Part shown: piece by piece, positions 423-12,809 of the stretch
How the letters are laid out: each line of letters begins with the position of its first letter
Numbering within the stretch: position 1 is the stretch's first letter
Assembly (NCBI GenBank): GCA_002269645.1
Contig: NIVC01002364.1
Span: forward strand, 1 to 64,000
Length of the DNA: 64,000 bases
Reading direction: 5' to 3'
Origin: Macrostomum lignano
Lineage: Eukaryota
Notes under the pieces: model-generated
Databases searched by the model: none
Told to the model about the DNA's origin: nothing
What the model saw: the letters and a program-made list of their open reading frames with translations, nothing else
Program-made: the position numbers and the translations under genes

Positions 423-3400
423 GTGCTCAGAGCGTCCTACACTGGGCCCAGGCGGGGCTACAACGATGACAGGTGGCACACGTTAATTATTAAACGACGG
501 GCTAATTACCTGGCCTTCTACGTTGACGACGACAGGCCTGGGATGGAGTTTCAGAAAGGTTAGTTATATAGTAACTATAAGAATCCAAGATTGGTTTTTT
601 CCTCTTTCGTTTAAAACATCTGGTCAACATGACGTCCTGTTACCAACTTGACGCCCTGTTACCAACTTGACCTCTGTTACCAACTTGAGCCTAGCTGTTA
701 CCAACTTGATGCCTAGCTGTTACCAACTTGATGCTAGCTGTTACCAACTTGATGCCTAGCTGTTACCAACTTGATGCCTAGCTGTTACCAACTTGACGTT
801 CAGTTACCAACTTGACGCCCTGTTACCAACTTGACGCCCTGTTACCAAATTGACGCCCTGTTACCTCCTTGACGTCCGTTACCAACTTGACACCCTGTTA
901 CCAACTTGATGCCTAGCTGTTACCAACTTGACGTTCAGTTTTCAACTTGACGCCCTGTTACCAACTTGACGCCCTGTTACCAATTGACGCCCTGTTACCT
1001 CCTTGACGTTCCGTTACCAACTTGACACCCTGTTACCAACTTGATGCCTAGCTGTTACCAACTTGACGTTCAGTTTTCAACTTGACGCCCTGTTACCAAC
1101 TTGACGCCCTGTTACCAACTTGACGCCCTGTTACCAAATTGACGCCCTGTTACCTCCTTGACGTTCCGTTACCAACTTGACGCCCTGTTACCAACTTGAC
1201 GCTCTGTTACCAACTTGACGCCCTGCTACCAACTTTGACGCCCTGTTTCCAACAAGTTTACTATCAATACTTATAATTTATTAACTTGACGTTCTGCAAA
1301 CAGTCTTTTGGAGTTCTGACACTCACTCATAAACCTATGGTAGCTACATACGTTTAATGTCTAGCTTGCATTAAATCTAACATTTTCGACAGTTATACTT
1401 CCGGTCGATGTCAGAAGAGGCTTTGTTTGGCAAATCGACAGCATCGAAATTGGGGGCTGCAATTTGGGCACCATGACTGGGCCGTACGACAACTTCTACG
1501 GTTTCAAAGGCAAATTGCAGAACTTCCATTGGCTGACACTAAATACTTGTACGACCTGTTCCGAGCCTCAAAGAGATTCCAGTTGGAGATGAAAACTCCG
1601 GACCATCTGACCACCCCGACGCCGAAACCGACGCGACCCAGTCCACCGGAGAAGCCGGAGAGCGACTTCACGCTCACATTCCTGCGGACTCACCAGTACA
1701 GTCGCCTATCCAGCGGGACAGTGATGCTGCGCAACATTGACTCAACTGGCTTCACCATGGAGCTCTCATTCAGAACCAGAGAAAGCAGCGCAGTGCTAGT
1801 ATTTATCAATATTCTTCAGGAGACTGAGAAATTTTTCGGTCTAGAACTGCACGAAGGACGGCTGCGTTACAGCTTCAACCTGAAGGACCGCTACTCGGAC
1901 TATGTGGGCCACGTGGGCCAGCTGAATGACGATCGTTGGCACCGGGTTTGGCTGCACATTTTCACACCGGATCGTTACGGCCGTGGTCAGAACAGGATGT
2001 ACTTTGTTGTCGACGGCGTCAACATCGAGGGTCCTCTAGTCAGTAGCATGTTCACCTATCAGGGTGAGGTGTATCTCGGCGGCGTTGATGACGACAGCCT
2101 AGCCAGAAACTTGGAGCGTTTCGGTTTTAGATCGTACGCTAAGCCCCAGTACTCTGGTTGTATGGGTCAGTGATGTTTTACCAAACCTCGGGTCACATTG
2201 CTCCGCTCAACCGGGCCTACAATCTCAAATCGGAGCCGAGTGGAAGCGTCATTCGCGGCTCAGTCTGCCAGCTGATGCGATGCGCCGACGACAGCGGCTT
2301 CTGCTCCAACGGTGGCACGTGTCGCGAGACAGATGACGGCCGGCTACAGTGCGTTTGTCCCGCTGGAATCGGCGGCGAGCGCTGCGAGTTGCGACCGGAG
2401 TGCCCGATGAACTTCTGCAACGGTAGGGGAGTCTGCGACTGTCAGGGCCGCTATCCCTGCAGCCCGCGCTGCACCTGCAACGCCAATTGGTCCGGCGACC
2501 GCTGCCAGTACCAGATGTCCTGCCCTGACTCGTTCCGCTGCCAGAACAACGGCGTTTGCACCTGCAGCGGTAGCTCACCAAGCTACGTCTGCCGTCCGAG
2601 TGCCGCTGTCCAACCGGCTTCACTGGGGTCTTCTGCGAGACGCCGCTTCGCTGCGATGCCAGCCTGTGCCAGAACGGCGGCACCTGCTACTGCGATCGGC
2701 CGAGCTGTTACGTGGCCGATGCGTGACCAAGTGCAACTGCCGCAGACTGTACAGCGGCGACTACTGCCAGAACTTCGACTGCGGCACGTACTTGAACCAG
2801 TGCAACGGCCGGGGCACCTGCAACTGCCGCAACGAGGATGACTGCACCTGCAACTGCCAAAGCGGCTACACGGGCGTCCGGTGCGACCAACAGCCCGAAC
2901 AGTGCGACGGAGTCGTCTGCGGCAACTTCGGTTTTTGTCGGTCACCAACGGCCAGCGATCGTGCGACTGCAGCCGGAGCGGCTACTTTGTCAATGGACTG
3001 CAGTGCTCCAGACCGGCCGATGGCTTCCTGATTAGCGGCGAAGTGATCTACGGACCTAGCGGTACTTCTTCGCACAAGCCAACTCCTGGTGGTTACTACG
3101 TGCTCCAGCTGCCGTCGCCTAAGCTGACTGACGCCGACAATGTCACCATTGGCTTCCAGACTTACAACAAAGCCAACACTAGCACTATCCTGACCTTCAA
3201 CGGCACAAATGGCCGGTTCTGGAACTTGGAATTGGACGACGGAGAGTTGAAGCTGAATCAGAACTCAGTTCGTTATGCTATTCGACTGCCGAATAGTGTC
3301 AACTTGGCTGACGGCACGTACCATACCATCTATCTGGAGCGAGAAGGCAACCTCTACAGGGTTTTTATCAATGGAACGTTTTTGACGAGGTTTACCACGT

Positions 3401-12400: not shown

Positions 12401-12809
12401 AGGCAGACAGACAGACAGACAGACAGACAGACAGACAGATTTACAGGATACTGAGATATTCCGACAGACACTTCTCAGACAGGCGATAGGACAGGCACTA
12501 GCATCAATGTCGCATTTCTCCCCATAGGTTCAGTCAATCTGCATCAGCGTGGACGCCGAGATCCTGGTCTCCGGCAGCTGGGACGGCTCCATCCGGGTGT
12601 GGAAGCTAAAAGACGGCTCCCAGCTGTGCTGGTTCACCTCCAACATCGACATCTTCAAGGTGATTCTCAGCCGAGACAAACGCTGCGTAGTGGGCCTTGG
12701 CGAGCGGGCGAACAATCGGAAGCTGATCATGCTGCAGATCATCCGGCAGAAAAGTCGGCGAACCCGCAGTCGAGGACAATCGGACGGACAGGCGATTGCT
12801 GAGACCTGA
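423..12809 (+). CDS. 5'-truncated multi-exon gene: LamG x4 / EGF-like x7 ectodomain, Gly/Ala-rich stalk, single TM helix, cytoplasmic linker and WD40 repeats (neurexin/Caspr/crumbs-like ectodomain); >=1650 aa visible
   Basis: Phase-consistent exons: 423-558, 1393-3400, 3699-3779, 5026-5259, 5930-6415, 6925-7415, 7580-7687, 7779-8078, 9354-9650, 10364-10609, ~11571-11852, 12528-12809 (TGA). LamG motifs NDDRWH (x2), [26 protein letters not shown] and YSGCM. EGF motifs [20 protein letters not shown] segment [24 protein letters not shown]40 motifs [40 protein letters not shown]. Exon 2 needs five +1 corrections; the acceptor at 11570 is a weak AAG. Confidence 0.8.
640..1252. repeat. Minisatellite, 19-22 bp unit (tgttaccaacttgacgccc / tgttaccaacttgatgcctagc), intron 1
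   Basis: Directly visible tandem array with variant units. Confidence 0.95.
1393..3400 (+). CDS. Large exon 2 (LamG-LamG-6xEGF-LamG) interrupted by five -1 frameshifts
   Basis: The domain-like translation steps successively through frames: NFHW|ADTKY ~1531; GCMG|SVMF ~2165; YVCRP|ECRC ~2597; CYCD|SAELLRGRC ~2696-2711; GFC|SVTNG ~2938. It overlaps supplied ORFs 1427-2173, 2158-2841, 2600-3031 and 2881-3408. Confidence 0.8.
5785..5851 (-). mobile_element. tRNA-derived SINE head or degenerate tRNA pseudogene
   Basis: Reverse complement gggttgtagcctagttgttaaa...gattcgattcttgaccc has A-box-like and B-box-like motifs and complementary ends, but the stems are imperfect. Confidence 0.35.
6575..6742. 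repeat. 15-bp minisatellite (gctttagcaccaggg) ~11 copies
   Basis: Visible array; it explains ORFs GFSTR-n and LVLKP-n. Confidence 0.95.
7432..7560. repeat. (GATA)n microsatellite
   Basis: Visible; lies in intron 7416-7579. Confidence 0.97.
8110..9326. repeat. 23-bp minisatellite (ttgaattgggcactgattaaagc) ~53 copies
   Basis: Period 23 (8161 to 8184); fills almost the whole intron 8079-9353. Confidence 0.97.
9354..12809 (+). CDS. WD40 beta-propeller exons (four exons, all phase 0), C-terminal part of the LamG/EGF/TM gene
   Basis: Exons 9354-9650, 10364-10609, ~11571-11852 and 12528-12809 give WD-type blades, e.g. [30 protein letters not shown] and [32 protein letters not shown]. Confidence 0.9.
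9770..10145. repeat. 30-bp minisatellite (tgtctacctaagggtgtctatctacctcat) ~12 copies
   Basis: Visible; explains the repeat part of ORF 9749-10627. Confidence 0.97.
10628..11448. repeat. 35-bp minisatellite (tatagattagcaatccatctactcatatgcttggc) ~23 copies
   Basis: Period 35 (10681 to 10716). Confidence 0.97.
11870..12440. repeat. (GACA)n microsatellite
   Basis: Visible; explains the CLSV-n ORFs on the minus strand. Confidence 0.97.

Follow-up and report, generated by a model that had tools for sequence, protein, structure and literature searches.

We analyzed a stretch of 64,000 nucleotides (nt) from the flatworm Macrostomum lignano (contig NIVC01002364.1 of assembly GCA_002269645.1, positions 1 to 64,000; hereafter the window), which contains, at positions 423-12809 of the forward strand, most of a gene that encodes a neurexin-like surface receptor bearing a cytoplasmic WD40 propeller. 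Comparison with homologous sequences suggests that this gene is a divergent member of the family of PHRED-1 (Pharynx regeneration defective-1), known from the planarian Schmidtea mediterranea: the member is new, whereas the architecture has been on record since 2017. A PHRED-1 family type I receptor with a propeller as its tail is the best overall explanation of the data, and we put its probability, including a partly inferred mechanism, at about 0.85.

One Reading Frame from Ectodomain to Propeller

The 12 exons at 423-12809 join into one reading frame, given the restoration of five single bases in the exon at 1393-3400 (discussed below). The resulting open reading frame (ORF) encodes 1651 amino acids (aa) with no internal stop and represents the C-terminal part of the receptor; the 5' part of the gene, equal to about 360 aa of a paralog, lies upstream of the window. 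All acceptors carry AG, and 11 of the 12 donors, as tallied, are GT. The remaining donor is GC (GGAG/GCAAGT, 6415/6416; slashes mark splice junctions), and it must be used, as the reading frame and phase close only with it. The intron at 6416-6924 is accordingly of the GC-AG type, with the classic sequence context of GC donors. From 7415 on, every junction is in phase 0 (7415/7580, 7687/7779, 8078/9354, 9650/10364, 10609/11571, and 11852/12528), and the frame stays open up to the stop codon at 12807-12809. This translation agrees with an earlier note, made from the sequence alone, that had followed the frame from a transmembrane helix at about 7300-7360 through the exons at 7580-7687 and 7779-8078 into the WD40 exons, and that had described the gap between 8078 and 9354 as a 23-bp satellite. 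We located the helix at 7287-7355; the satellite occupies 8110-9326 of the 1275-nt intron, and no more than 31 and 27 bases of unique sequence remain on its two sides.

Laminin_G_2 domains (LamG) were found at three separate places in the window protein (Pfam; 3.5e-20, 7.1e-06, and 1.1e-06), in addition to a partial LamG encoded at 423-558. Matches to EGF, EGF_2, and EGF_TEN fall at residues 343-486, and the cysteine spacing of EGF repeats runs on to residue 585. A single hydrophobic segment of 23 residues forms the transmembrane helix, followed by a Cys-rich juxtamembrane motif. Helix and motif (CKPG.C) are kept in the homologs P0003, P0006, P0067, P0069, P0080, P0181, and P0195 (P and L numbers are our labels for protein and nucleotide sequences), and one transmembrane segment was found in these seven as well as in P0075 and P0226. 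The window lacks the 5' end of the gene; hydrophobic N-termini are present in P0069, P0195, P0181, and P0226, and the signal peptide of full-length homologs together with the one transmembrane segment indicates a type I topology.

The cytoplasmic region comprises about 520 aa, including a propeller encoded by the last four exons (Pfam WD40, 4.8e-20). For the last 380 residues, an AlphaFold2 model calculated from an alignment of six family sequences reached a mean predicted local distance difference test score (pLDDT) of 86.4 and a predicted template modeling score (pTM) of 0.84, with 31 β-strands. Its nearest structures in Foldseek are the eight-bladed propellers Tako8, ODA16/DAW1, Rsa4/Notchless, TBLR1, and Fbw7 (query-normalized template modeling score, TMq, of about 0.7, compared with about 0.54 for seven-bladed propellers); a complete WD40 propeller of eight blades is predicted for the intracellular part. 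The first strand of the model is the VDC segment that opens the exon at 9354, and RKLIMLQII forms the last; among the conserved motifs, these two are also the most specific to the family. Across ten family members 50 columns are invariant, including VD, VTG, LEGH, SGS.D..R.W, and RKLI. Generic searches with the propeller (Pfam, PDB sequences, and Foldseek) returned only WD40 matches that are unspecific to the family.

Receptor and Propeller as One Protein

Given that all of these junctions are in phase 0, frame continuity alone is weak evidence of a fusion. The strong evidence is comparative, and it argues that the combination of LamG, EGF, transmembrane helix, and WD40 is genuine and conserved and not an accident of annotation. 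A second M. lignano locus, on contig NIVC01000524.1 of the same assembly, encodes a paralog of 2155 aa (PAA81565.1; P0067) with the same architecture and the same junctions from transmembrane helix through linker to WD40. In tblastn, this paralog matches all exons of the window in order, from its residue 360 to its end; identity is 45-63% in the ectodomain exons and 73-84% in the WD40 exons, which suggests that the cytoplasmic module is under stronger constraint.

Three other species are represented by intron-free, transcript-like contigs, each with transmembrane helix and propeller in one ORF: L001 (3448 nt) encodes LamG-EGF-LamG, transmembrane helix, linker, and WD40 in 874 or more aa, L002 (2536 nt) the end of a LamG, the transmembrane helix, and WD40, and L004 (8037 nt) a protein of 2500 aa, P0069, with a signal peptide, at least five LamG, about ten EGF repeats, one transmembrane segment, and the propeller. 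The window protein aligns with P0069 in a single BLASTP alignment that extends from the first LamG through the transmembrane helix into the propeller (E = 6e-178). Full-length homologs from Dicrocoelium dendriticum (2542 aa), Anoplocephala perfoliata (3038 aa), Owenia fusiformis (3736 aa), and Aplysia californica (1764 aa) each have one transmembrane segment with LIWA...CKPG.C and, after it, the same propeller with RKLIMLQ at its end. The single-pass LamG/EGF receptor with an intracellular WD40 propeller that the earlier note had proposed is thus borne out by the same fused ORF in a second M. lignano locus, in other flatworms, in an annelid, and in a mollusc. The junction between transmembrane helix and WD40 is likewise present in homologs from other flatworms and lophotrochozoans, where the note had suggested looking for it: the motif NVY.SE..K/VDC is kept exactly across 8078/9354 in all homologs, indicating that the exon at 7779-8078 belongs with the propeller.

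An alternative would be two genes, with the receptor ending soon after the transmembrane helix, possibly by read-through of the 7415 donor to a stop at 7438-7440, and a soluble WD40 protein beginning at the ATG that opens the exon at 7779-8078, possibly after trans-splicing at the 7779 acceptor. This ATG indeed stands right after the acceptor, read-through at 7415 soon meets the stop, the phase-0 junctions weaken the argument from frame continuity, and WD40-only models exist in the databases (P0001; P0004, 501 aa; P0005, 453 aa; and W6U9D0 of Echinococcus granulosus). However, the WD40-only sequence L003 begins within an intron (ttttcag/CATGG...), and two longer proteins, of 2500 and 1082 aa, fall into the clusters of P0004 and P0005 (identity of 90% or more); both of the longer proteins hold transmembrane helix and ectodomain. 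Transmembrane helix, linker, and propeller also share one ORF on the transcript-like contigs of the three other species, and the 8-kb planarian phred-1 transcript was confirmed by rapid amplification of cDNA 5' ends (5' RACE), with a Western blot run against the predicted 298-kDa protein. We regard two genes as highly improbable, and the four WD40-only models are truncations. A stand-alone WD40 protein of about 500 aa, starting at a Met shortly before the propeller as in P0004 and P0005, was likewise considered and rejected, in view of the intronic start of L003 and the clustering with longer proteins that bear the transmembrane helix.

It could also be argued that a chimeric assembly or an artifact of annotation has joined unrelated loci across satellite DNA, since tandem arrays in introns are regions prone to misassembly. 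Nevertheless, the parts stand in the same order on another, independent contig of M. lignano (NIVC01000524.1) and in at least four further genera belonging to three phyla, and this cross-species conservation effectively refutes a chimera.

Relationship to PHRED-1

PHRED-1 of S. mediterranea combines LamG and EGF domains, a transmembrane segment, and intracellular WD40 repeats (Adler and Sánchez Alvarado 2017, bioRxiv 10.1101/131789). The protein has 2536 aa, encoded by an 8-kb transcript, with a signal peptide, six LamG, nine EGF, a transmembrane segment, and WD40 repeats, of which SMART recognized three; it is expressed in planarian muscle and required for the patterning of muscle fibers. RNA interference (RNAi) against phred-1 leads to thickened and disorganized muscle fibers, with secondary defects in the regeneration of pharynx and gut. 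The 14 homologs reported are from lophotrochozoans only, including Schistosoma, Lottia, Octopus, Capitella, and Echinococcus, with strong conservation of the WD40 region at the C-terminus; the paper does not mention Macrostomum (bioRxiv 10.1101/131789). Later literature only cites PHRED-1, and reports no mechanism for the WD40 part. The earlier note had not recognized the architecture from characterized families, adding that an existing description would remove the novelty; the claim of novelty fails, because PHRED-1 already has LamG, EGF, a transmembrane segment, and intracellular WD40, and has been studied functionally.

All testable sequence-level features of PHRED-1 are found in the window gene: several LamG, EGF repeats, a single transmembrane segment between these and an intracellular WD40 region with a conserved C-terminus, and a lophotrochozoan host. 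In line with this host, the window encodes exactly the database protein P0001, whose UniParc number (UPI0007A1367A) lies near that of the M. lignano entry UPI0007A15145; the two may stem from one batch. Laminin_G_2 has five matches each in P0067 and P0069 (among the best 25 of the 27 and 31 matching Pfam families, respectively). The colinear P0069 resembles PHRED-1 in size and domain plan, and its contig of 8,037 nt compares with the 8-kb planarian transcript. Of the published phred-1 quantitative PCR primers, only one matched L004, with four mismatches, which is weak evidence but compatible with a related planarian species. The window gene differs from PHRED-1 in coming from another flatworm order, the Macrostomorpha, which is not among the 14 homologs, and in being one of at least two divergent paralogs of its species (ectodomain identity 45-63%); its linker is shorter than that of the paralog P0067. 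Whereas three WD40 repeats were published for PHRED-1, the model presented here has a full eight-bladed propeller.

To delimit the family we ran an exhaustive profile search of 1.84 billion representative sequences, in which the top 150 were mostly multi-repeat WD40 proteins; family members were confined to those matches that consisted of one or two long stretches, namely P0003, P0080, P0139, P0181, and P0195. Two profile searches of a word-indexed database returned mainly short unnamed fragments and added only the monogeneans Cichlidogyrus and Protopolystoma. All other named members found are flatworms (trematodes, cestodes, and monogeneans), an annelid, and a mollusc.

Comparison with Neurexin, Caspr, Crumbs, and Membrane-Held Propellers

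The term "neurexin/Caspr-like" used in the earlier note is apt for the ectodomain, for which the best match among solved structures is neurexin-1-alpha (3r05, E = 5.8e-46; P0069 residues 335-861), with similar LamG-EGF-LamG modules. It does not hold for the rest of the protein, which has a propeller tail. Strictly speaking, the window protein does not qualify as a neurexin, a Caspr, or a Crumbs, because the short PDZ- or FERM-binding tails of these proteins are replaced by the cytoplasmic propeller region of about 520 aa. The tail of neurexin is short, without a propeller, and ends in a PDZ-binding motif, whereas the C-termini of the PHRED-1 family are not conserved (..AIAET, ..TIDEV, ..SPMPI, ..KQVLV, and ..RLVSK) and a PDZ tail of the neurexin type was not encountered; the EGF repeats, about 7-10 in a contiguous array, also depart from the plan of neurexin. 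Crumbs and Caspr/Neurexin IV resemble the window protein as single-pass proteins combining EGF and LamG. Where the window protein has its propeller, the tail of Crumbs measures 37 aa and contains FERM- and PDZ-binding motifs, and Caspr has a 4.1-binding tail, together with discoidin and fibrinogen-like domains. The latter two are absent from P0067 and P0069 among the same best 25 Pfam families, which are of LamG, EGF, and WD40 type only, and a Pfam scan of the window ectodomain gave LamG and EGF families only.

A cytosolic WD40 propeller held at a membrane by a transmembrane segment of the same polypeptide is also found in Sec12/PREB and SCAP. These are proteins of the endoplasmic reticulum without adhesion-type ectodomains, Sec12 being a type II and SCAP a multi-pass protein. 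The window protein has no specific sequence relationship to either of them; the match of its propeller to the Pfam family Beta-prop_SCAP is weak and well below the cut-off.

Frameshifts and the State of the Window Copy

Several points weigh against a functional PHRED-1 family receptor encoded in the window. The fused frame of this copy is predicted from genomic sequence, and the window encodes exactly a WD40-only database model (P0001, 368 aa, from 9354). A database search found no NCBI protein with 90% or more identity to this copy. Both the number of blades and the "velcro" closure of the propeller come from a model based on only six sequences, and the function is extrapolated from planarians. 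Finally, if the five frameshifts are real, the window copy cannot make a full receptor.

The exon at 1393-3400 shifts frame after 1535, 2166, 2593, 2715, and 2941, and each shift corresponds to one missing base in a run of G or C (GG to G, GGGG to GGG, CCC to CC, GGG to GG, and GGG to GG, respectively). The counterpart of this exon in the paralog contains two introns, one of which (L005 13349-13701) is located exactly at the site of the first frameshift (about 1538). We consider it probable that the five -1 shifts result from under-calling of homopolymers in a long-read assembly. A less likely explanation, though one that carries some weight, is that the window copy is a decaying paralog or pseudogene, inactivated recently, with the intact paralog Mlig000372g7 carrying the function. 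Decay would fit the occurrence of five frame changes over 2 kb of exon 2, their restriction to a single exon with about 41% of the coding bases (a chance of about 1% under random placement), and the finding that no NCBI protein model was retrieved for this copy, yet the paralog has one. However, each of the five is a -1 change in a run of G or C, the hallmark of under-called homopolymers in assemblies of long reads; the remaining 2.9 kb of coding sequence has no in-frame stop and no frameshift, and the whole frame is open once corrected. The splice sites are all intact, the EGF repeats keep their cysteine pattern, and a gene model from the same species (P0044, described below) is visibly scrambled by insertions and deletions, pointing to the quality of the assembly.

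Improbable in our view is a third reading, in which the frameshifts are real but affect the ectodomain exon only, and the paralog is becoming the source of a product without an ectodomain. Such a product would be a membrane-anchored or soluble WD40 protein, made for example from the ATG of the exon at 7779 and perhaps by trans-splicing, and the exons for transmembrane helix, linker, and propeller would then be intact and under constraint. If it were true, this paralog would be a natural experiment that separates the function of the PHRED-1 propeller from that of the receptor. Homopolymer under-calling in an otherwise intact receptor gene remains our preferred interpretation.

Database Annotation of the Family

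Public names are inconsistent across P0195, P0224, P0225, P0139, and P0001, and include "neurexin-1" and "WD repeat-containing protein"; another name in use is "COMPASS-like H3K4 histone methylase component WDR5A". P0195 is the Aplysia protein XP_012941838.1, which was automatically named "neurexin-1" by NCBI, and P0224 is W6U9D0 of E. granulosus. Several gene models of the family are cut between transmembrane helix and propeller, with WD40-only models in M. lignano and in the cestodes Echinococcus and Hydatigera. The M. lignano entry P0044 (UniRef A0A1I8F7F0, "DUF569 domain-containing protein") reads a closely similar WD40 locus in scrambled frames and includes translated intron sequence that matches the window at about 10290-10363; it is an annotation artifact of an assembly rich in insertions and deletions, with a misleading name. 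Automated annotation thus routinely splits or mislabels the PHRED-1 family, and surveys of domain architecture will undercount it.

Exons, Introns, and Other Features of the Window

The features of the gene are listed in table 1.

Table 1. Exons and intronic tandem arrays of the M. lignano gene (window coordinates; AF2, AlphaFold2; TRF, Tandem Repeats Finder)
Position	Strand	Feature	Evidence
423-558	+	First exon in window, mid-LamG	Acceptor AG 421-422; tblastn, P0067 residues 360-404, 63% identity
1393-3400	+	Exon; end of a LamG, a whole LamG, about 7 EGF-like repeats, start of next LamG; five single-base deletions	Pfam Laminin_G_2 3.5e-20; EGF, EGF_2, EGF_TEN
3699-3779	+	Short exon within third LamG	tblastn, P0067 residues 1082-1105; phases fit
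5026-5259	+	Exon; LamG end and single EGF-like repeat (5145-5258, ending YYGQRC)	tblastn, Pfam
5930-6415	+	Exon; last, membrane-proximal LamG; ends at GC donor	Pfam Laminin_G_2 1.1e-06
6925-7415	+	Exon; Gly-rich stalk, transmembrane helix 7287-7355, Cys-rich juxtamembrane motif 7353-7397	Hydropathy
7580-7687	+	Exon; cytoplasmic linker, both ends phase 0	P0067 residues 1609-1646; counterpart in paralog locus L005
7779-8078	+	Exon; cytoplasmic linker, last ~10 residues are conserved propeller lead-in	
9354-9650	+	WD40 exon 1, opens with VDC strand of propeller	81% identity to P0067; AF2 model
10364-10609	+	WD40 exon 2	Continuous with next exon in paralog
11571-11852	+	WD40 exon 3, canonical WD repeat (...VHVWD...)	Pfam WD40 4.8e-20
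12528-12809	+	WD40 exon 4; last blades, family motif of 10 residues (12717-12746), basic tail, stop	
625-1253		Intron array, periods 19/135 bp	
3970-4119		Intron array, period 62 bp	
6578-6743		Intron array, period 15 bp	
7432-7560		Intron array, period 4 bp (TAGA)	
8110-9326	.	Satellite, 23-bp unit, inside intron 8079-9353	TRF; 52.9 copies, 97% matches
9770-10176		Intron array, period 30 bp	
10650-11445		Intron array, period 35 bp	
11867-12439		Intron array, period 4 bp (GACA)	

Eight of the 11 introns of the gene in the window hold a tandem array of their own, unrelated to the others. The intron at 10610-11570, which contains the 35-bp satellite, is absent from the paralog, where the exon is continuous (L005 28366-28908), and AGGTG is present on both of its flanks. 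We considered a gain of this intron, but the AGGTG repeat is explained just as well by the splice consensus and a precise intron loss, so that the data favor neither direction. Ten further large tandem arrays were observed at 13-64 kb of the window; among the satellites, a 21-bp unit is repeated in 66 copies at 18353-19738 and accounts for the strong GC skew (0.44) of the 18-20 kb bin. An uninterrupted ORF of 2390 aa is located at 39558-46730 of the forward strand. Its N-terminal part has hydrophobic segments and long tracts rich in Thr/Gln/Ser and Pro/Glu/Asn/Ser, encoded by 90-bp and 18-bp tandem repeats, and its C-terminal half of about 1200 aa looks non-repetitive; no Pfam match was found for this ORF at E <= 0.01.

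Proposed Mechanism and Implications

In our reading the gene encodes a type I protein in which a neurexin-like ectodomain, one transmembrane helix, the Cys-rich juxtamembrane motif, a variable low-complexity linker, and a predicted eight-bladed cytoplasmic propeller follow one another. By analogy to planarian PHRED-1, the ectodomain may bind ligands in the matrix or on neighboring cells at the surface of muscle cells. Tethered to the membrane, the propeller could act as a scaffold on which cytoskeletal or signaling partners dock, and these partners would then set the thickness and pattern of myofibers, as the planarian phenotype suggests. The cluster of juxtamembrane cysteines may be palmitoylated and so keep the linker at the membrane, and the N-terminal VDC strand would pair with the C-terminal RKLIMLQ strand to close the propeller.

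The combination of a receptor with a propeller is an unusual design among animal adhesion receptors, and the higher conservation of the propeller points to a conserved cytoplasmic partner. M. lignano, a flatworm model ready for transgenesis, has at least two divergent PHRED-1 paralogs.

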